From positions 124,001 through 188,000 of the IMG/VR virus record IMGVR_UViG_3300021964_000012: 64,000 nucleotides of DNA; one strand, 5' to 3'. Position numbers and translations under genes: made by a program. The notes below the pieces were generated by a model that saw only the letters and a list, made by a program, of their open reading frames with translations, was not told where the DNA came from and made no database searches. Each line of letters opens with the position of its first letter. Positions within the stretch are counted from its first letter, which is position 1. Positions 1,417 to 50,171 of this stretch are shown here, in pieces.

Positions 1417-3711
1417 CTATTCTTGTGTTTCATTGACAGTTACAATACCATTTGTGTCTATGTAAGCATCACTGGGTGAGCCTTTAGGTTTAACATCAAG
1501 TGTTATTCTTGGACGTTTGCCTTTGAACCATACATCAGCAGTTACATGAACATTTTCCAGTTTTTCAAAAAGTATCTTTTTACTTAACGGCACTTTGATA
1601 ATTTCGTCAATCTTTCTGCCCAATGGTCTTGCACCCATTTTAGGATCATATCCAACGTCAACAAGATATTCTACCATTGCTTCTGTTACAATAATATTAA
1701 TATTTTTTTGTTTTAGGTTTGCTCTGAGTTCGTTGATAAACTTTGCAACAATTTTTTTGATTGCAAATGGTTCTAGTGTTTTGAACTTGACTATCAGATC
1801 TAATCTGTTGCGTAGTTCTGGCTTGAAAAAATCTTTTACTGCTTTGTCTTCACTGCCAGTACGTACAAGTTCTTGACCAAATCCAATATTGTTGTTTTCG
1901 TTGTCTCTAGCACCAAGATTTGATGTTAGTATAATAATACAGTTTTTTACATCAACAGTTTTGCCATTTGATCCTGTGATCTTACCTTCGTCCATCATTT
2001 GTAGAAATATGTTTGCTACATCTGGATGGGCTTTTTCAATTTCATCAAACAGCAGGACACTGTAGGGATTTTTACTAACATCTGAAATTAGTTTACCACC
2101 GCTGAGTGTGCTATCATCATAGCCGACAAAACCTGGAGGTGCGCCAAGCAAGCTGCTAACTGTGTGTTTGTCTTGATATTCGCTCATGTCATAACGCAAC
2201 AGATGCATTTCTAAATTGTTGCTCAACAGTTTAGCAAATTCAGTTTTACCTGTACCAGTAGGACCAAGAAATAAAAATGCTCCCATTGGACGATTTGGCG
2301 TGCTTATACCTGCATAGTTTACATAGAGCCTTTCTAGCACTTCGTCTACTACATGATCTTGTCCAAAAAGTTTTTCTTTGATGTTGTTATCTAGATTTTG
2401 TACTTTTTCACTAGCATCGCTCGCCACTTTTGTTTCTGGAATGTTTGCAATTCTTGAAACCTGTTTGTCAATTAAATCTTCTGTAATTACCAAACCTTCT
2501 TGATCTTTAACACGTTCAGTTGCACATGCTCCATCTACTAGGTCTATGCTCTTGTCTGGATTTTTTTTGTCGTGCATGTATCTAGTTGCTAATTCAACTG
2601 CTTTTTCAATGGCGCCTTTGTCTATTGCGACATTGTGAAACTTTTCTAATCTAGGACGCAATCCTTCTAATATCTTTACGGTGGTTTCTTTGTCAGGTTC
2701 ATCTATGCTGACTTTGTAAAAGCGCCTCATCAATGCACGATCTTTTTCAAAACTCTCGTAAAATTCTTCCCAGGTTGTACTTGCAATAACTTTGAGATTG
2801 CCTTTGGTAATTGCAGGTTTGATCATGTTGGAAAAATCCAAACTGCTTCCACCTGTTGAACCAGCACCTTTCATGGTATGTGCTTCGTCTATAAAAAGTA
2901 TACAGTTCTTTTTTGATTCTAAAGCTGAAATAATATCTTTGAGTTTTTCTTCAAATTCGCCACGGTACTTAGAGCCAGCAAGTAGACTGCCTATTTCCAA
3001 ACCCCACACCTCAAAGTTTTTAAGGAACTTTGGTATTTTATTGTCTTTTATTCTAGTTGCCAAGCCTTCTGCAATAGCAGTTTTTCCAACACCTGGATCT
3101 CCTACCATTAATACATTACTTTTAAAACGTTTAGCTAATACTGTAACTATTTCTTCGAGTTCTGTTTCTCGACCAATAACTGGTTCAAGTTTATCGTCTT
3201 TGGCAAGTTTGCTCACATTTATGCAGTGCTCTTCGAGTATTTCATTTGCGGTTGAGATGTCAATTCCGTCTTTGGATTTACCATTATATGTTTGTTGCCA
3301 GTGCATTACAAATTCTTGTTTGACAAGTCCATGTTTCAGCATATAGTAGGCCGCATGACTGTTGGTTTCAGCCATGATTGCTAACCACAGATCAATGGTT
3401 TCCATACTTCGTCTACCACCAAACATAACCTGTGTTAATGCTCTGTTGAAAACTCTTTCAAGTGCATTTGTCTTTTTTGGGTCTCCTTTAACTGGATTGC
3501 TGACCAGCATGGTTTGTGAATCAATATATAATTGTAAATCTGACACAATAGCATCAGAACTGGAACCAAAAGACTCAATGCATCTTTTGAATTTTGGATA
3601 CTGCACCATTGCTAATGTAAGGTGTTCGATTGTCACATAATCGTGTTTCTTGTCTTTCGCAAGTTTATGAGCAGTTGCAAGTATTTGTTCTATTTCAGGA
3701 CTGTGTTGCAT
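1417..3711 (-). CDS. clpA: ClpA-type AAA+ unfoldase
   Basis: Clp N-domain, two Walker A motifs (GDPGVGKT, GPTGTGKT), GSKYRGEFEE pore loop, ClpP-docking IGF loop (NNIGFG), no ClpB M-domain. Confidence 0.92.
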   Translation of the reverse strand: MQHSPEIEQILATAHKLAKDKKHDYVTIEHLTLAMVQYPKFKRCIESFGSSSDAIVSDLQLYIDSQTMLVSNPVKGDPKKTNALERVFNRALTQVMFGGRRSMETIDLWLAIMAETNSHAAYYMLKHGLVKQEFVMHWQQTYNGKSKDGIDISTANEILEEHCINVSKLAKDDKLEPVIGRETELEEIVTVLAKRFKSNVLMVGDPGVGKTAIAEGLATRIKDNKIPKFLKNFEVWGLEIGSLLAGSKYRGEFEEKLKDIISALESKKNCILFIDEAHTMKGAGSTGGSSLDFSNMIKPAITKGNLKVIASTTWEEFYESFEKDRALMRRFYKVSIDEPDKETTVKILEGLRPRLEKFHNVAIDKGAIEKAVELATRYMHDKKNPDKSIDLVDGACATERVKDQEGLVITEDLIDKQVSRIANIPETKVASDASEKVQNLDNNIKEKLFGQDHVVDEVLERLYVNYAGISTPNRPMGAFLFLGPTGTGKTEFAKLLSNNLEMHLLRYDMSEYQDKHTVSSLLGAPPGFVGYDDSTLSGGKLISDVSKNPYSVLLFDEIEKAHPDVANIFLQMMDEGKITGSNGKTVDVKNCIIILTSNLGARDNENNNIGFGQELVRTGSEDKAVKDFFKPELRNRLDLIVKFKTLEPFAIKKIVAKFINELRANLKQKNINIIVTEAMVEYLVDVGYDPKMGARPLGRKIDEIIKVPLSKKILFEKLENVHVTADVWFKGKRPRITLDVKPKGSPSDAYIDTNGIVTVNETQE

Positions 3712-15030: not shown

Positions 15031-15059
15031 ATTATATTATGATTAGCGAGGTAAGTCAA
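15031..15059 (-). promoter_or_regulatory. sigma70-type promoter for the clamp loader
   Basis: TTGACT-17-TATAAT, then AGGAG RBS. Confidence 0.7.
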
Positions 15060-16734
15060 CCAGTTCTGGAAAAACATCTAATAGTTTTACATTGTAGATT
15101 TTATCTCTTTGTTCAATCTCTTTCCAAAATAGTTTAGGATTAAACGTTTCGTTATTGTCCATGGCATGTATAATTGCCATATAACCAGTTGTACTTTTTC
15201 CATAAGGATCAAGTGGGCGTAACCATTCTACATGTTTTTGAAATTTTTCTCGGATTAGATCTTTGAGATACTCAGGAGCAGTTGTAACACGCAGATATTG
15301 CTTGTTGGTTAGTAGGTTCACAATCCATTGGTCAGCATCTATTAATCCTTGCTCTACCCAATTTCGATGAAAGTCTGGCATATGTAATGCGTTCAGAATT
15401 GTAATTGTTGATTGAACATTAAAGAATATATCTGGGCGTTTTTGTTTAATTTGTTTGGTAAAATCGACAATCTTGTCCCAGGTGTATGATCCAGGGCGTA
15501 AATATAACGCACGATCGTATTCAGCATCAAGACTTGCAAATACAATAATATTTTTAAAGTTTTGCCACAACTTAAAAATATCTCTTGAACCTAATCCAGA
15601 ATAAGTCATGTTTGTAATATACATTAGTTTTATATCGTGTCTTTTTTTCTCATCTAGTTTTTCAACAAAATCATATGTTTCTTTCATCATTAAAGGCTCA
15701 CCACCTTCGAATATGATCTGATTAAAATGATCTATATGTTTAAAATATTGTTCTAGTAAATCTGGATTACTTGCTACAAAGGCTTTATCAGGAACAGTCA
15801 TTCCTAGTAACTTTTCCACACTGTAAAGACTACTCGAAAACTTAGTCTGACACATTCTACATTGCAGATTACATAAATTGTTTGGTTTATAGTTCAGTAA
15901 CTTTATTTCAAATTTTTCAAGACTTCCATCATTATTTGTGCTTAAAACACTTGGAAATTCTTGTATGAAGTCTCTATTATAGGCCGTTCTTGCAGTATCA
16001 CCTTTATATTTTTGATCTTTTAAATAGCAAGTTTTACAAGCCTCTAGTTCTTTGCCTTCAAGCATATCAAGTCTAAGTTGGCGTGTATTTTTATTGTTCC
16101 ATATATCTTCAAGAGTTTCGTTGTTTGCATTTCCTAAAGCGGTGTCTGTAGATATGTAACAACAAGGGTTCACCTTATTATCTTGTGTGACATACTGACT
16201 TATCCACGGTAAAACACAAAATGTTTTACTTTCTAAAAATAGGTGCCTTGCTCTATCTGGCAAATTCTCTAAGAGAACACTGTTATTTCCTAGCCCACTA
16301 AAAGTTTGATAGATTGAAATATCTTTATATGTATTTGTATAATCACCTGAAGCTTTGTATAAATTGATTAGCACAGGGTCAACACTTGTGTTTTTATGAA
16401 CCCAAAGATATTCTTCTTCTAAATTAGGATTAGTTGAAATAATAATTGTAAAAAAATTACTAATATCAAGTTCGTTTAACATTGTCTGCACACTTTGTAG
16501 TACAGTGTTAGATTGTAATTCTTTATAAAAATCTTTTGTTATTGTCAATACAATGCGATGGTGTTCTTGATATGTAGTTTTGTAATTTTTTTTTAATTGA
16601 TTATAAAGCTCGAATAGATTATTTTCGTATAAGTCACAATCAATTACATCAAGAACTGTGTATGTTTCTTTTAGTTCATTTATCCATTGTTCTATTGTTG
16701 GGAGATTACTACCTTTGGTAAATGTCAATGGCAT
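15043..16734 (-). CDS. radical SAM protein with SPASM/twitch-like domain
   Basis: CNLQCRMC, GGEP, FCVLPW..PCC, CKTC. Confidence 0.85.
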   Translation of the reverse strand: MPLTFTKGSNLPTIEQWINELKETYTVLDVIDCDLYENNLFELYNQLKKNYKTTYQEHHRIVLTITKDFYKELQSNTVLQSVQTMLNELDISNFFTIIISTNPNLEEEYLWVHKNTSVDPVLINLYKASGDYTNTYKDISIYQTFSGLGNNSVLLENLPDRARHLFLESKTFCVLPWISQYVTQDNKVNPCCYISTDTALGNANNETLEDIWNNKNTRQLRLDMLEGKELEACKTCYLKDQKYKGDTARTAYNRDFIQEFPSVLSTNNDGSLEKFEIKLLNYKPNNLCNLQCRMCQTKFSSSLYSVEKLLGMTVPDKAFVASNPDLLEQYFKHIDHFNQIIFEGGEPLMMKETYDFVEKLDEKKRHDIKLMYITNMTYSGLGSRDIFKLWQNFKNIIVFASLDAEYDRALYLRPGSYTWDKIVDFTKQIKQKRPDIFFNVQSTITILNALHMPDFHRNWVEQGLIDADQWIVNLLTNKQYLRVTTAPEYLKDLIREKFQKHVEWLRPLDPYGKSTTGYMAIIHAMDNNETFNPKLFWKEIEQRDKIYNVKLLDVFPELVDLPR

Positions 16735-32433: not shown

Positions 32434-32492
32434 TCTCCTTGTTTCTAACTGTATATACAGCTTAACACAAAATGCTCTAAAGTCAACCTTTT
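32434..32492 (-). promoter_or_regulatory. early promoter/leader cassette
   Basis: AAAAGGTTGACT-16-TAAGCT-GTATATACAGTTAGAAACAAGGAGA. Confidence 0.65.
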
Positions 32493-34372
32493 TCTAGAAA
32501 AAGAGTTGTTTTTTCTGTGGAATATTCTACACGAGCCTGCCATTTTTTGTTTTTACGTGTACTGTTCATCCACTGTGGCCAGGTCACAACCAAGCCTTTT
32601 GCTGGATATGCTCTGTGTATTCGATAGTCAGTAGGGCGAATATTGAGGTCTTCTTTACCAAGTGCATATTCAAACACGTTGGCTCCTAGTGTTATTTCTG
32701 TCACTGGCTCATGTGCAAATATAGTTTGCTGCCGTTCTTGTATGTACATTAAATCTAAGATTAGTTTATCATCTGGAGCAAAGTGTTGTGCTACTGTAAG
32801 TATATCTTGGAAAGTTTGTGAACGATTGGTTATTCCTAGATCTTCAATTACAGGTGCATAGGTTAAACCTGCTAAGAACATATTGAATTCTAAGCGATCA
32901 GCATAACCTTGCCATTTTGTCAGCCATTTGTGTGCCGCACAATCTTTGTTTTCTAATCCCCAGTCTAACATATACTCATAAAACTTTTCAAATGGTACGC
33001 CGTGACGTTTGTTTAGATATCGTGTAATAATCTGTGTAAAACCATTGGCATCCATCATTGAAGTGTACCAAGTCCATAACCATAGTTTCTTCATTTGTTC
33101 TGCAGGCAAATCTTTTGTGCCTGTGAGTGTTTCTTGATATTCATCTACTATATTAGAAAAATAACTTTTAAGGGTGGTTTGTGTAATACCGTGTTTTTTC
33201 TTGTATTCAGGTTCATTCATCTCTGAGTTTTCAAGAATAGTCACAGGATATGCTTCTACAATAATATCTCTGCTCAACAGATCACACAAGCCTGTAGTCC
33301 ATGACTTCCAGGTTTCTCCGGGCAAGCCAATTATTAATTCTGTGTTTATGCTTAACCCTTCTTTGTGAGCAGTGTCTGCTACTTTCTGCATGGCTTCTTC
33401 TTTGAGATTTACACGTTTAATATGCTTCAGAACTTCTGGATTGGTACTTTGCAACGCCATAGTAAAACGTCGCATCATATCGGCTTCCATCAGTTTAACT
33501 GCCATGTCGACCAACTGCACTGTGGCATTTTTACTCCAGTTGGTATCAAACAACACTGGAAATCCATACTTCTTTTTTGTGCGAATAAGCATATCTGTGA
33601 TTTCCATATCTCTATCTTTGAATATACCAAAATTAGCATCTGTGTTTGTTATTAGTTCTAGTTTGTTTCGGCCTATCCATTCTAGTTCAGCTTCAATGCG
33701 TTCTAGGTTAAACTTCTTTACTTTAGAAAAGGTTGTACCTCCCCAGTCACAGAAGGTACACATAAACGGACAACCTCTGTTGGTTTCCAATACTGCATTC
33801 CAAATTTTACCTGGATACATGTCAGGCAAATGATCAAACAGTCCCATCAGATAAGGCGATGGTACTGCTGACAAATCCATTATACGTTGACTTGGACCTG
33901 TTAACACTGTCTTGCCGTTACGGTTGATGCTGATACCAGGCACCATTTCTTCGTCTTGTTTGCCGACAAAACTTTGCAACAATCCAGTAAAACTTATTTC
34001 ACCTTCTTGGTGTATGAGATAATCAATATAGGGTTTGTCTGCAAAAAAGTTTTCTGACTTGTTTGGTGTTTCTGCGCCACCAATAATTATTTTACATTCT
34101 GGATAACGAGCCTTTACGGCTTTAGCCAAAGCCTGATTGTAACTTACGTTCCATACGTAACTGCTTAGTCCAACAACCGCAGGGTCAACCATCTTATCCA
34201 CCAGCATGTCGATTGGCTCTTTTACACTGTACAAACCTGCAAGACAATAGTTGTCAAGTATATGAGGTTGTGTAGTTGCATAGGCCCAAACAACACCAAC
34301 ACTATATGGAAAGTAATAATAGTTGCTACCTGGCAACTCCAGACTCATTTGTGCCATGTAAACATTCTTCAT
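32483..34372 (-). CDS. cobalamin-binding radical SAM enzyme
   Basis: N-terminal B12-binding domain (VGLSSYVWN, IIGG), ETNRGCPFMCTFC, ELIIGLPGET; ATG at 34372 lies 5 nt after ATAAGTA. Confidence 0.88.
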   Translation of the reverse strand: MKNVYMAQMSLELPGSNYYYFPYSVGVVWAYATTQPHILDNYCLAGLYSVKEPIDMLVDKMVDPAVVGLSSYVWNVSYNQALAKAVKARYPECKIIIGGAETPNKSENFFADKPYIDYLIHQEGEISFTGLLQSFVGKQDEEMVPGISINRNGKTVLTGPSQRIMDLSAVPSPYLMGLFDHLPDMYPGKIWNAVLETNRGCPFMCTFCDWGGTTFSKVKKFNLERIEAELEWIGRNKLELITNTDANFGIFKDRDMEITDMLIRTKKKYGFPVLFDTNWSKNATVQLVDMAVKLMEADMMRRFTMALQSTNPEVLKHIKRVNLKEEAMQKVADTAHKEGLSINTELIIGLPGETWKSWTTGLCDLLSRDIIVEAYPVTILENSEMNEPEYKKKHGITQTTLKSYFSNIVDEYQETLTGTKDLPAEQMKKLWLWTWYTSMMDANGFTQIITRYLNKRHGVPFEKFYEYMLDWGLENKDCAAHKWLTKWQGYADRLEFNMFLAGLTYAPVIEDLGITNRSQTFQDILTVAQHFAPDDKLILDLMYIQERQQTIFAHEPVTEITLGANVFEYALGKEDLNIRPTDYRIHRAYPAKGLVVTWPQWMNSTRKNKKWQARVEYSTEKTTLFLEKG

Positions 34373-34406
34373 ATTCATACTTATGTTAATTTATTTTATT
34401 CAAAAG

Positions 34407-35761: not shown

Positions 35762-37315
35762 ATGCGAATATTAGTACTAGGAAATAACACAAAAGATACT
35801 GACGATCAAGTCAAAGAGCTTGCAGAGAAGGCTGGTACATATAATCACGGGCTCGTTGAAACAACAGATCAAGATTTCTCACAACACGGATATTACCACA
35901 CCACATTAATAGATTTATCACCTGGTGAAATAATGAAATTTGTACACCAGTTTGATGAAGTGATGGTGTTAGATCAACCAGCAAGGAGTTGGGATAGTCA
36001 AAAGCCAAGACTTAGCACCTATAAGTTGATCACTTCCCTAGAAAGACAGAGCAATAGACTAGGTCTTAAAGTTAGCGGTACTGATAATGACAGTTTTGTT
36101 GATATGAAGTATTGGACAGATTTGTTCAAATCAAATCGAAGTTTTTGTGCTTATCCATGGATAGTACATAGTCAAGACAAGGTTGATGCTAATAAATTAA
36201 ATCTTTGTGCTCGAAGTTCGCACGAAGTCACTTCATTAAAAGATCTTGGCAACTGGCAAACAAATCCTGCCTTTACAAAAATTAGAGAAAAAATGAAACG
36301 TGGCGAAAAACTTCCAGGCACATGTCGTGTATGTTACAAATACGAAGATCGTGGATTAACAGGATATAGAACACACGACAGCCTAGACTGGATTGCACGT
36401 TTAGGACTAAAAAATATTAAAGATTTTGACAAGATAGATAGTCCGTATTATTATGAGCTTAGACTTAGTAACCGATGCAACCTAATGTGTCGAATGTGTA
36501 CACCTCAACACAGTCATCTACTAAAGCAGGAGTTTGAAGAAAATCCTGGTTTGGTCAATAGTGGCCAGATGGACGATCCAACCCAAAGTTGGACAGATAC
36601 CGGTGTAGTTGACATAGAAAAATTAACATCTAAACATAAAGTTTACCTAACCGGCGGTGAGCCAATTATTATGCATGAAGTCTATGCATTCATGCGACAA
36701 TGCATAGACTTAAGAAAAACTGATTTTCTTTTTACCCTTGGAACAAATGCTCAACGATTAAATCCATTGTTCTTAAATCTTGCTAGTAAATTTAGCAATA
36801 TGCACTTCAGTGTAAGTATTGATGGTTATGGAAAAGTAAATGATTATATAAGATGGAAAAGTGATTTTGATACCATAATTAAAAATTGTCATATTCTAAT
36901 CAATCAAGGACACCAAATAACATGGAATCATGTTCCAACCATATGGGGAGTACATCGAACACACGAATTGTTTGAATACGTCAGCGAACATTTTCCTAAG
37001 GTTCCTCTCTATTTACAATACAATCGTGTTGAAATTACCAGTGCATTTAAAAGTCCGCTCATTGAGGAGACAATCGAAAGCATGGAACGATGTAAAAAAA
37101 CAATATTGTACACTAGTGACGGCAAAGACTGTACCAGTGGAATTGATGCTTTTTATGATCACTATAGTAGATATAAAGTTAACAAAGATGATTTAAAAAA
37201 GTTTTTTACATGGAATGATTTAATGGACAAAGCCAGAAATATATCAATGGCAGATTATATCCCAGAGCTAGACAGATGCAGAACAATGCTAGAGGTGAAC
37301 CAGAATGCAATTTGA
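35762..37315 (+). CDS. radical SAM protein with SPASM/twitch-like domain
   Basis: CNLMCRMC, GGEP, FCAYPW, CRVC, SIDG. Confidence 0.85.
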   Translation: MRILVLGNNTKDTDDQVKELAEKAGTYNHGLVETTDQDFSQHGYYHTTLIDLSPGEIMKFVHQFDEVMVLDQPARSWDSQKPRLSTYKLITSLERQSNRLGLKVSGTDNDSFVDMKYWTDLFKSNRSFCAYPWIVHSQDKVDANKLNLCARSSHEVTSLKDLGNWQTNPAFTKIREKMKRGEKLPGTCRVCYKYEDRGLTGYRTHDSLDWIARLGLKNIKDFDKIDSPYYYELRLSNRCNLMCRMCTPQHSHLLKQEFEENPGLVNSGQMDDPTQSWTDTGVVDIEKLTSKHKVYLTGGEPIIMHEVYAFMRQCIDLRKTDFLFTLGTNAQRLNPLFLNLASKFSNMHFSVSIDGYGKVNDYIRWKSDFDTIIKNCHILINQGHQITWNHVPTIWGVHRTHELFEYVSEHFPKVPLYLQYNRVEITSAFKSPLIEETIESMERCKKTILYTSDGKDCTSGIDAFYDHYSRYKVNKDDLKKFFTWNDLMDKARNISMADYIPELDRCRTMLEVNQNAI

Positions 37316-38613: not shown

Positions 38614-40053
38614 GTGGCGGAAATTTATGCCCTTGTGGCAGGTACATTGTATGGACTACTAATAGGTATTATACCCGGAGCAGGTGCTACCACTGGCTTG
38701 ATATTCTTGTTTCCTTTTATGATGATGTTTCCAGATCCTTATCTAGCAGTAATATTTGTAATGGCAGTGGTAGCAGCCTCAACAACAGGTGATACTTACA
38801 CTGGTGTGTTGCTAGGAATACCCGGTGCTAACAGTGCAGCCGCTACCATGGTAGATGGATTTCCACTTGCACTTCAAGGTCGTGCAACCTATGCTATCAG
38901 TGCCGCAGTAACAACATCAACTGTTAACGGATTACTATGGGGTAGTTTGGTTTTCTTTTTATTGCCTTGGTATACAGGACTTATAATGATATTTGGTGTT
39001 CCTGAGCTGTGGGCTTTTACCTTGCTTGCACTGGTAACAGTGACCTTTGTAAGTAACCGATGGTGGATACGTGGATTAATTGCATTATGCACAGGAATAT
39101 TTGTTGGAATGATAGGCGTGGATCCAAATACAAATGCTGATCGTTTTACATTTGGTTGGGAATACTTAGGCGATGGCGTGCAAATATTGCCAATGATTGC
39201 AGGCTTGTTTGCCATACCAGAGTTATTGGATGGACTTAAAAACAGACACACAACTGCTTCAGCAACAACTACAAATGGAACACAGACTCGTGAAGGAATC
39301 TTAGCAGTATGGAGCAATCGTTGGTTAGCACTACGTGGAGGATTCATTGGTGCATTTATTGGTATACTTCCAGGACTAGGTGGAGCAATGGCAGACTGGA
39401 TGGCATATGGTCAGGCAGTTGCTACAACAAAGAATCCTTCAGTGCCTTTTGGCAAAGGCAACATCAGAGGAGTAATTGGGCCAGAAGGTGCTAACAATGC
39501 ACAAAAAGCAACATCAATGATTCCTACAGTTTTATTTGGAATACCTGGAGCTCCTTTTGCGGCTATTATTATTGGTTTGTTTATGTACTTGGACTTTGAG
39601 CTTGGTACTATTGATCTAGCACAAGACGATCAATTCTTTGATAGTATGCTTTATGGATTCATGTTGGCAACACTGTTGGTTGGTGCTCTATGCTTATGGT
39701 TAACAAAATATATTGCCATGATTGCGACTGTGCCTTACAAATACTATTTTCCTCTACTGTTAACGTTTATAATAGCGGCATGTGTACAATACACAGGTGG
39801 ATGGGAAGATTATGCTATATTGATCGTCTGCTCCATAGTAGGAATCAGTGCAAAGAAATTCAAGTTCTCAAGACCTGCAATGCTATTTGGTTTTATACTT
39901 GCAGAAAGAGTTGAGGCTTTAACTATACAGATGCACGGTCTGTATACATTCGACAGACTGTTAACTCGTCCTATATTTTGGACATTGTTAGCAGTTGTAA
40001 TAGCTGTGTTAATTTGGGGTTTAACCAAACGCAGTAAACTAGATTATGCATAA
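38614..40053 (+). CDS. tctA: tripartite tricarboxylate transporter large subunit TctA
   Basis: GIIPGAG, GIPG..AAATMVDGFPLA.QG, GILPGLG, PEGANNA, GIPG; polytopic; GTG start. Confidence 0.88.
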   Translation: MAEIYALVAGTLYGLLIGIIPGAGATTGLIFLFPFMMMFPDPYLAVIFVMAVVAASTTGDTYTGVLLGIPGANSAAATMVDGFPLALQGRATYAISAAVTTSTVNGLLWGSLVFFLLPWYTGLIMIFGVPELWAFTLLALVTVTFVSNRWWIRGLIALCTGIFVGMIGVDPNTNADRFTFGWEYLGDGVQILPMIAGLFAIPELLDGLKNRHTTASATTTNGTQTREGILAVWSNRWLALRGGFIGAFIGILPGLGGAMADWMAYGQAVATTKNPSVPFGKGNIRGVIGPEGANNAQKATSMIPTVLFGIPGAPFAAIIIGLFMYLDFELGTIDLAQDDQFFDSMLYGFMLATLLVGALCLWLTKYIAMIATVPYKYYFPLLLTFIIAACVQYTGGWEDYAILIVCSIVGISAKKFKFSRPAMLFGFILAERVEALTIQMHGLYTFDRLLTRPIFWTLLAVVIAVLIWGLTKRSKLDYA

Positions 40054-47042: not shown

Positions 47043-47276
47043 ATATTTTAGTATAAAAGCAAAAAAATCTGCATCATTACTGAAAAAGAATGCATAAGCA
47101 CCTGGTGTGTTAGTTGAACTTGATGTGAGAATTTGCCACTTCCATCCTGGAGATAGCTCTTGTTTACACCAATCTACTACAGCATCAATCTTGCCGGTGG
47201 GAAGATGCAGTGTTTTTGCATGTGGATAACCTTCTTCAATTTTGATTACCCTGGTGTATTCTTCAATCAATTCCAT
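47037..47276 (-). CDS. hypothetical protein
   Basis: 79-aa ORF, WC...W.W...Y.F.F....F.LKY pattern. Confidence 0.55.
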   Translation of the reverse strand: MELIEEYTRVIKIEEGYPHAKTLHLPTGKIDAVVDWCKQELSPGWKWQILTSSSTNTPGAYAFFFSNDADFFAFILKYG

Positions 47277-47694
47277 GATACAATGCTTCGTCTAAATAGT
47301 CTACAGGCAAATTCCAATCACTATAACCTTGTTGCAAAAGGTCAATATAACCAGCACTTGGTGCACTGTACACCAATGGTGGATTCATATCATATGCCAT
47401 AAAGGTATCCCCATCTTGTTCTAACCACATCTTGGTATAGTAGTAAGGGAATCCTTCAAAATGATCTAGTGTCTCTTCGCAAGCAGGCGTGATGTTCCAC
47501 AGGCATCCTGGTACACGATGGCCAGGTGCAGGTTCTATTGTGGCATGATGACAGAACACCAATCGCCAGTCTCTAACTGTATAGGCTCCAAGAGGTATGG
47601 CATCTGGACAACGGTACTTCATTGCCTCTAGTGCCATGTTAGCACCATAAGCAAAGTACAGTCTAGTTGGTTTTTGTAATAGATTTAATTTCAA
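47263..47694 (-). CDS. gamma-glutamylcyclotransferase (AIG2-like)
   Basis: LYFAYGANM...RCP, LDHFEG.P.YY. Confidence 0.85.
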   Translation of the reverse strand: MKLNLLQKPTRLYFAYGANMALEAMKYRCPDAIPLGAYTVRDWRLVFCHHATIEPAPGHRVPGCLWNITPACEETLDHFEGFPYYYTKMWLEQDGDTFMAYDMNPPLVYSAPSAGYIDLLQQGYSDWNLPVDYLDEALYHGID

Positions 47695-49227: not shown

Positions 49228-49479
49228 CTACTCCTTGTTGTTGTCTTTAAATGGAAAAATTTTAGTATGTTCTTCTTGTGGATCTCTTTCCCAACTGATC
49301 TTTGCCCATGCTCTTTCGTGAAAATAGTACAATGCCATTTTGGTTATTACTTCTATGCTTGCTATTGCTCCTGCCAATTGCCATGTGCCAGTAATAATCC
49401 AACTTATTAAAAATGTGTCAGAGGTAGCAACAATACGCCAACTGAAAGTTTTAGCAAGACTCCGTTTGTAAGTTGCTAT
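49228..49479 (-). CDS. DUF2061-like membrane protein, apparent ATA start
   Basis: Not in ORF track: (I)ATYKRSLAKTFSWRIVATSDTFLISWIITG...KMALYYFHERAWAKISW; ATA 7 nt after AAGGAG. Confidence 0.7.
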   Translation of the reverse strand: MATYKRSLAKTFSWRIVATSDTFLISWIITGTWQLAGAIASIEVITKMALYYFHERAWAKISWERDPQEEHTKIFPFKDNNKE

Positions 49480-49597
49480 TGGCTTTCTCCTTGTTTCTGT
49501 TGTAAGAACCTTTGCCTTTGCGATTTACAACCACTGAGGATCGCAATGTTCTAACTGCTTTGGCTATTGGATTCTTCACTGTTGTTTTCTTTTTCAT
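49451..49597 (-). CDS. arfA: ArfA-like alternative ribosome-rescue peptide (48 aa)
   Basis: Not in ORF track: MKKKTTVKNPIAKAVRTLRSSVVVNRKGKGSYNRNKEKANSNLQTESC; KGKGSYxR is the ArfA signature. Confidence 0.6.
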   Translation of the reverse strand: MKKKTTVKNPIAKAVRTLRSSVVVNRKGKGSYNRNKEKANSNLQTESC

Positions 49598-49829
49598 TTT
49601 CTGACTTTTTCTTCAATGCTCTTGAGAGTGCTGGTGCAGGAATATCTTCAGTTACTGAGATGTGCATTCTTGGATTTTCTTCTTGTAAAAGTTGTGCCAT
49701 TTTTTCTGCACGTTCTCGTCTTGTAAAAACATGTACTACACTATCTTCCATATCTCTCATCAAATAGTAGTTTTTTTCGTTCAGAATAGAATTTTTTGGT
49801 TTGGTAAGATAAACTTTTATTGCATACAA
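49551..49829 (-). CDS. hypothetical protein
   Basis: 92-aa ORF, TTG start. Confidence 0.5.
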   Translation of the reverse strand: MYAIKVYLTKPKNSILNEKNYYLMRDMEDSVVHVFTRRERAEKMAQLLQEENPRMHISVTEDIPAPALSRALKKKSENEKENNSEESNSQSS

Positions 49830-50171
49830 TTAATTGGCCACACTTTTATCAACGGCTGTATCTAATACATACCAATCGTTTAGAACTGCCAACAGGTCTC
49901 TGTTACTCTGATCATTAACATATATTCTTCCGTCCCTGGGCAAGTTTTGTTCGACCTCTCGCGGAGTATGACCTTGTGCTAGAAATTGATCAGTTACACA
50001 TTCATACACGTAAAACTCGCCATCGCGTACTTCTATTCTACATGGCACTAGTTTTGCAACAAATTCTTTTAGAAGTTTTTCATACATTCTATTTTTCATC
50101 TGAGTATCTCTGTACCACATTATACCAGTGGATAGTATAAACAGTACTATTCCTATTATTACATATTCCAT
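49830..50171 (-). CDS. hypothetical membrane-anchored protein
   Basis: N-terminal TM, FLAQG motif. Confidence 0.55.
   Translation of the reverse strand: MEYVIIGIVLFILSTGIMWYRDTQMKNRMYEKLLKEFVAKLVPCRIEVRDGEFYVYECVTDQFLAQGHTPREVEQNLPRDGRIYVNDQSNRDLLAVLNDWYVLDTAVDKSVAN

Follow-up and report, generated by a model that had tools for sequence, protein, structure and literature searches.

The locus examined here raises the question of whether an open reading frame (ORF) of 48 codons, encoded on a jumbo phage genome, is a phage-borne form of ArfA, the alternative ribosome-rescue factor, and whether it is free of the control under which bacterial ArfA is kept. ArfA is a back-up system of beta- and gammaproteobacteria that is held off via translation of a non-stop mRNA; Alphaproteobacteria rely on tmRNA and ArfB. 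The window analyzed is a stretch of 64,000 nucleotides (about 37% G+C), bases 124001 to 188000 of an IMG/VR record of 328,292 bp with direct terminal repeats. The large terminase encoded by this record shows 53% identity to the Pseudomonas PA5oct group and about 50% to Sinorhizobium phage Phosso and Agrobacterium phage Atu_ph07, and the phage is a jumbo myovirus with a presumably proteobacterial host. Megablast of the region against cultured phages returned no match, and a search of window positions 44 to 56 kb against Rfam returned nothing.

The 48-codon ORF and its overlapping neighbors

The ORF (P0001) lies on the minus strand at positions 49451 to 49597 and runs from an ATG start to a TAA stop. 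Its translation matches exactly the 48-residue peptide with NPIAKAVR and RKGKGSYNR that the initial annotation had reported at this position. Since the frame is closed five codons 5' of the ATG, this codon is the sole start available. The Shine-Dalgarno sequence 5' of the ATG is weak, and the start sits within an upstream gene of 69 codons (49551 to 49760, minus strand), of which the last 47 nucleotides overlap the beginning of the ArfA-like ORF in a different frame. At the other end, the last 29 nucleotides of the ORF are overlapped by a downstream gene encoding a DUF2061 membrane protein (49228 to 49479, minus strand; PF09834, 87 bits over the full profile).

Two close relatives of the 48-residue peptide were recovered from other metagenomes, with 84% and 81% identity and lengths of 45 and 43 amino acids. 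Both are found in the same gene order, in which the 69-aa gene is followed by the ArfA-like peptide and then the DUF2061 gene, and the 47-nucleotide overlap is conserved in both (L013 and L014). Within codons 17 to 39, which overlap neither neighbor, each pair of orthologs displays three to four codon differences that are synonymous in the ArfA frame, compared with zero to one in the other two frames, and purifying selection on the ORF in its own frame is thereby shown at the codon level. Past codon 41, the constraint moves to the DUF2061 frame, while the tail of the ArfA-like peptide is variable and its stop shifts (43, 45, and 48 aa). This switch of constraint, together with the variable tail, points to a functional peptide of approximately 41 residues followed by a free tail. 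In an alignment of the three orthologs, the conserved core comprises codons 1 to 41 (M1 to S41; 49475 to 49597, minus strand), and it corresponds approximately to E. coli ArfA residues 6 to 48.

The orthologs were called by gene callers on two related contigs. In an exact-sequence look-up, both upstream neighbors are recorded from the 328,292-bp contig and the 48-residue peptide is absent, so that the ORF evidently went uncalled there; the earlier description of the peptide as unannotated thereby gains indirect support. Taken from these sequence comparisons, the ORF is a real gene and no chance ORF.

The downstream DUF2061 gene has no in-frame ATG, GTG, or TTG. It contains an ATA codon at 49477 to 49479, located 7 nucleotides after a strong Shine-Dalgarno sequence, AAGGAG (49487 to 49492), that lies inside the ArfA-like ORF. 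The ATA, the AAGGAG, and their spacing are invariant in the three phages, and changes that are exclusively synonymous start right after the ATA, at which the DUF2061 gene apparently initiates. Less probably, ribosomes may enter it from the ArfA frame through a +1 shift. A programmed frameshift fusing the 69-aa gene, the ArfA-like ORF, and the DUF2061 gene was also considered and rejected as unnecessary, because the ArfA frame is closed five codons 5' of its ATG, the homologs are free-standing, and no classic slippery site is present. The sole match of the 69-aa gene product is to the ribosomal silencing factor RsfS, at a nonsignificant E value of 0.09.

Homology to ArfA across a family of short phage peptides

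A search with an ArfA HMM had been proposed as a check on the ArfA-like assignment, and for the peptide alone its outcome is divided: the Pfam ArfA family (PF03889) is matched with an E value of 7.2e-5, but the score of 22.6 bits is below the 25.5-bit gathering threshold. The match covers only positions 24 to 42 of the 44-position profile, in the C-terminal half of the peptide. No other Pfam family was matched, and searches of NCBIfam and PHROGs yielded nothing significant. Profile A1, which combines the peptide with seven relatives from viral contigs and metagenomes (8 sequences), finds E. coli ArfA as its sole match among 177,635 PDB sequences (E 3e-5), and all eight sequences match PF03889. 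Profile A3 comprises 125 relatives, including the peptide itself, drawn from full-library clusters. Its only PDB match is again E. coli ArfA, with an E value of 5.9e-12 and an ungapped alignment over ArfA residues 4 to 55; PF03889 is matched by 122 of the 125 relatives (best E 2.8e-12), and the sole other family among them is DUF7230, seen in seven. The A3 match in PDB and the PF03889 matches of the relatives establish homology to ArfA and uphold the ArfA-like assignment made earlier. By profile comparison, the peptide is a true but divergent ArfA homolog, belonging to the ArfA superfamily by descent, and the alignments show homology across all the residues that are ordered in ribosome-bound ArfA.

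For residue-level comparison we used PF03889 and E. coli ArfA (YhdL; PDB 5MGP, 5MDV, 5H5U, and 5U4I), whose chains carry the motif KKGKGSY.R as the initial annotation had stated. In E. coli, ArfA residues 15 to 24 form a helix at the decoding center, F25 and the strand Q27-E30 dock RF2 (PMC8012679), and the basic tail occupies the vacant mRNA entry channel (PMC6299226, PMC8012679). The N-P-I-A-K-A motif of the phage peptide (residues 9 to 14; 49556 to 49573, minus strand) aligns with the ArfA helix N14-L19, and the two proteins have in common the N-x-I in this N-terminal helix (N9 and I11 correspond to ArfA N14 and I16). They also share a hydrophobic residue followed by Arg ahead of the hydrophobic strand (L18-R19, equivalent to ArfA F25-R26), hydrophobic residues at the strand position (V22-V24), and the basic tail K-G-K-G-S-Y-x-R. 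In the phage peptide, the K-G-K-G-S-Y motif (residues 27 to 32; 49502 to 49519, minus strand) is followed by N-R, and the tail as a whole reads R26-K-G-K-G-S-Y-N-R34 plus K36 and K38. Among the 125 relatives, the N, P, and A of the N-terminal motif are at least 90% conserved, as are K27, G28, G30, Y32, and R34.

The phage-encoded peptide has the length of mature, truncated bacterial ArfA. Cryo-electron microscopy finds 46 to 48 ordered ArfA residues, and a truncation to 40 residues is inactive (PMC8012679). The conserved core of the peptide maps to these ordered residues, extending to the equivalent of ArfA residue 48 and well beyond the inactive truncation, and thus exceeds the 40 ArfA-equivalent residues beyond which the tail is held to fill the mRNA entry channel. 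Several differences are also observed. The linker is two residues shorter than in ArfA, T-L-R replaces the P-x-[FY]-[RK] common to ArfA and most relatives, and the position of the ArfA KH motif (K44-H45) is taken by E37-K38, whereas K-H is present in many relatives. A Lys stands at the position of ArfA A18, a residue whose substitution in A18T abolishes RF2 activation by E. coli ArfA (PMC8012679). Finally, the core is followed by seven polar residues and the TAA, in contrast to the hydrophobic, dispensable C-terminal extension of ArfA. Structure prediction for a complex of the peptide with RF2_ECOLI gave a score of 0.01 and a peptide pLDDT below 50, which counts neither for nor against binding; off the ribosome, the peptide alone is expected to be disordered.

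The peptide belongs to a large set of 35- to 60-aa peptides that are diverse in linker length and tail. Searching a library of 1.8 billion proteins with the A1 HMM returned at least 338 clusters (50% identity representatives) at E ≤1e-3, and the best 150 of these 338 have a median length of 48 aa and a median of 13 residues after the Tyr. Ten clusters that were looked up are tiny, unnamed, and exclusively metagenomic. The contigs of two families that were inspected, of about 25 and 32 kb, look phage-like, with small unidirectional ORFs and the markers Phage_T7_kinase and Mtd_N. One ArfA-like relative, P0020, is encoded on a phage-like contig where a further gene (L022:11758-12120) shows a weak precomputed match to ribosome modulation factor (RMF).

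When 50,697 records of cultured phages were searched by tblastn with the Cr30 copy, matches appeared only in phages of Alphaproteobacteria, nine in number: Caulobacter phage Cr30, Erythrobacter phage XM05, Brevundimonas phages Bajun and Kikimora, Ochrobactrum phages ORM_20 and vB_OspM_OC, Citromicrobium phage RXM, Roseobacter phage CRP-212, and Pelagibacter phage HTVC027P. ArfA-like copies were confirmed by translation in six of the nine; the matches in Bajun, ORM_20, and vB_OspM_OC (E about 0.6) fall outside these six. With peptides this short and of such low complexity, tblastn misses most relatives, and the list is therefore nonexhaustive and its alphaproteobacterial bias an observation rather than a rule. 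A six-frame profile search of a Roseobacteraceae metagenome-assembled genome (MAG) and 300 other genomes of its class (Alphaproteobacteria) gave no match in the 300, the sole match being the MAG's own 3.8-kb contig. Likewise, arfA has been found in none of 2,376 Alphaproteobacteria (PMC11633108). A very strict pattern scan of genome contigs returned two loci, of which the one in Bacillus matches the tail only.

Such genes of 35 to 60 codons often escape annotation, as seen here and in three cultured phages. The Cr30 ORF (L010:1495-1647) is unannotated and is flanked by a hypothetical gene on one side and, on the other, by the genes that lead up to an RNA ligase, and that of Roseobacter phage CRP-212 (L011:1492-1617), also unannotated, lies inside the annotated gp38 in a different frame. 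Acinetobacter phage 133 harbors a degenerate unannotated copy (L029, about 601-714) with an AGGAG-TTG start, in which K-G-K-G-S-Y is missing and the tail reads R-T-K-Y-T-R-K-E-K. In addition, the 86-aa gp18 of Pelagibacter phage HTVC115P (L030:601-861) starts with the N-terminal module R-N-P-I-A-K-E-L-R-T-P-K-Y-K ... V-V, which continues into an acidic domain where the family otherwise has its basic channel-binding tail; judging from this protein, the N-terminal module may be a separable unit.

Phage ArfA as a kind is already known. Citromicrobium phage vB_CbaS-RXM gp10, which is mentioned in PMC8953757, and Brevundimonas phage Kikimora 04590 are annotated as ArfA in GenBank, and Pelagibacter phage HTVC027P gp30 has been named ArfA and is transcribed during infection (PMC12753301). 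These annotations and the published discussion of HTVC027P gp30 reduce the novelty that the initial annotation had implied. In the literature we found no biochemical or genetic study of phage ArfA. The three proteins share with the 48-residue peptide the family pattern N-P-x-A ... K-G-[KR]-G-S-[YF]-x-R and are about 40 to 50% identical to it over the core, but genome context and phage type differ, the present phage being a jumbo myovirus with a T4-like terminase. What is new is the stop-terminated, hairpin-free form in this jumbo phage, the size of the short-peptide family, whose members are mostly hairpin-free among the 16 genes tested, and an apparent association with hosts lacking ArfA.

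Stop codon, hairpins, and regulation

Bacterial arfA contains a stem-loop at which transcription ends or RNase III cleaves. ArfA is therefore translated from an mRNA without a stop codon, and it escapes tagging by tmRNA only when trans-translation fails (PMC8012679, PMC6299226). We compared the most stable 50-nucleotide hairpin within each gene and the 80 nucleotides downstream of it with those of shuffled sequences. E. coli arfA, the positive control, gives a z score of -5.3 at nucleotides 151 to 200 of the ORF, compared with +0.3, and thus no significant hairpin, for the 48-codon phage gene. The close relatives score -1.8 (L013, directly 3' of the stop) and -1.0 (L014, across the stop), and ten other phage or metagenome members remain above -2.4 at various positions. 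The region around the phage ORF is consistent with this result, as a consensus scan found no terminator-like site and a 241-nucleotide region folds no better than its shuffles (z = +0.44). Taken together, the terminator, fold, and hairpin scans show the gene to be free of an internal hairpin, an RNase III site, and a terminator ahead of or around its stop.

The family as a whole is mixed. Of the 16 genes scanned from phages or metagenomes, 13 have a z score above -2.4, and three carry strong hairpins. In Erythrobacter phage XM05 (L020:2016-2144; z = -5.9) the hairpin encloses the stop codon, in metagenomic contig L022 (6001-6120; z = -5.3) it occupies nucleotides 67 to 116 of a 120-nucleotide ORF, in its last third, and in Citromicrobium phage RXM gp10 (L017:1998-2180; z = -5.4) it is found early in the ORF, at nucleotides 25 to 74. 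RXM gp10 also has a hydrophobic C-terminal extension, as in bacterial ArfA, and differs in both respects from the 48-codon gene. Some phage copies may keep the non-stop regulation.

For the 48-codon gene itself, the own stop codon claimed earlier is present as the in-frame TAA at 49451 to 49453. A stop at the length of mature ArfA, together with the lack of a hairpin or terminator, makes "pre-truncated and not gated by tmRNA" a fair reading that fits the sequence, and the corresponding proposal of the initial annotation is in this respect supported (TAA; z of +0.3 against -5.3 for the control). A comparable arrangement is known from ArfT of Francisella tularensis, a short (40 aa) rescue factor with a KGKGS-like stretch that recruits RF1 or RF2. 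Its mRNA has a normal stop, contains no terminator or RNase III site, and is not gated by trans-translation (PMC6299226). In regulation, the phage gene works like ArfT, with its own stop and no attenuator. This is a likeness and not membership, as ArfT is not detectably related to the peptide, which matches PF03889 only, and belongs to a separate, broadly distributed family of KGG repeats (PMC6514570). BrfA of Bacillus subtilis is likewise small, recruits RF2, and places a basic tail in the mRNA channel (PMC8012679); it has no sequence similarity to the phage peptide, which lacks the KH motif that BrfA carries, and is made from non-stop mRNA, like ArfA.

Proposed role in infection and competing explanations

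The best explanation of the ORF, and one that we regard as reasonably probable, is a phage version of the rescue factor ArfA. The peptide would be made from an ordinary mRNA and would therefore, in cells with active trans-translation, escape the loss that tmRNA tagging imposes on bacterial ArfA. Its K-G-K-G-S-Y-x-R tail would probe the mRNA entry channel left empty in host ribosomes that have stalled at truncated mRNA 3' ends, and the N-terminal helix and hydrophobic strand (L18-R19, V22-V24) would dock host RF2. RF2 would then hydrolyze the peptidyl-tRNA, by which ribosomes would be recycled during infection. Such rescue would be constitutive, and its likely benefit would be to keep ribosomes available while mRNAs are cut, be it by phage-induced host mRNA decay or by RNA-cleaving toxins and defenses of the host; this benefit would be greatest in hosts without an ArfA of their own. 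The phage encodes three tRNAs but neither a tmRNA nor an RF-1/ArfB-type domain or Pth, and would thus depend on host RF2. We infer RF2 recruitment and rescue activity from the residues that the peptide shares with ArfA. Thermus RF2 is not activated by E. coli ArfA, and compatibility between the peptide and the RF2 of its host can therefore not be assumed.

The ArfA module is seen here in a jumbo phage and without its bacterial control. Extending this to the family, we tentatively propose that phages widely deliver a constitutive, stop-terminated ArfA to hosts that lack ArfA, which would recycle ribosomes during mRNA cleavage, counter RNA-cleaving toxins and nucleases or the phages' own shut-off, and bypass tmRNA tagging. 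This broader proposal is a possibility that we hold with low confidence. If the peptide is active, phages would directly manipulate ribosome rescue, which bears on mRNA-cleaving defenses as well as on the shut-off that phages impose on their hosts. In addition, the family would be a ready-made natural set of minimal RF-recruiting peptides in which RF2 or RF1 activation without a stop codon can be studied.

The main rival to a phage ArfA, which we judge to be unlikely, is an ArfA-derived decoy that would occupy the channel or A site of stalled ribosomes without activating RF2 and would block tmRNA-SmpB or ArfB, for example to keep phage proteins from being tagged and degraded or to disable the rescue pathways of the host. 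The binding sites of ArfA and SmpB overlap (PMC8012679), and the channel-binding tail is the best-conserved part that the peptide has in common with ArfA, while the Lys at the A18 equivalent and the missing KH motif would also suit a peptide that leaves RF2 inactive. The copies of Acinetobacter phage 133 and HTVC115P gp18, with a changed or lost tail and a retained N-terminal module, suggest functional diversification. However, the N-P-x-A motif and the hydrophobic strand, which correspond to the RF2 and decoding-center contacts of ArfA, are at least 90% or chemically conserved among the 125 relatives, and such strong N-terminal conservation argues for selection beyond the plugging of a channel; the trapping of ribosomes would also hurt the translation of the phage itself.

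It is quite improbable that the product is a small basic ribosome- or RNA-binding peptide that has only its ancestry in common with ArfA and acts in initiation, hibernation, or RNA chaperoning. A strongly basic composition, predicted disorder (pLDDT below 50), the diversity of linker length and tail across the family, and the weak RMF match on the contig of a relative would all be in line with such a role, but both functional halves of ArfA are matched, with their order and spacing preserved, and PF03889 is the only family that the peptide itself matches. Very unlikely, in turn, is a translated leader or overlap artefact, in which case the ORF would exist solely because the ribosome-binding site for DUF2061 and the end of the 69-aa gene lie within it. 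Neighboring genes do overlap both ends of the ORF, and the stretch encoding N-R-N-K-E-K-A-N-S, which contains the AAGGAG of the DUF2061 gene, is invariant. This reading is opposed by homologs in unrelated contexts without DUF2061, by synonymous changes that are confined to the ArfA frame in the central, non-overlapped codons, and by the significance of the match to ArfA.

The surroundings of the gene offer hints that are suggestive only. Two genes upstream of the ArfA-like ORF lies a gene of 113 codons (49830 to 50171, minus strand) whose product has an N-terminal hydrophobic helix and no significant Pfam match; for proteins in its 90% cluster, IMG gives the name "predicted RNase H-like HicB family nuclease". 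A HicB-like antitoxin encoded two genes 5' of a rescue factor would be in keeping with a role against RNases, and this neighbor and the RNA ligase context of the Cr30 copy may both hint at a theme of RNA damage. Elsewhere in the window lie genes for a ClpB-like double AAA+ protein, three radical-SAM proteins (one with a SPASM and one with a B12-binding domain), a TctA subunit of a tricarboxylate transporter, and a GGACT/AIG2-like cyclotransferase, with these genes located at 1417-3711, 15043-16734, 32483-34378, 35762-37315, 38614-40053, and 47263-47694.
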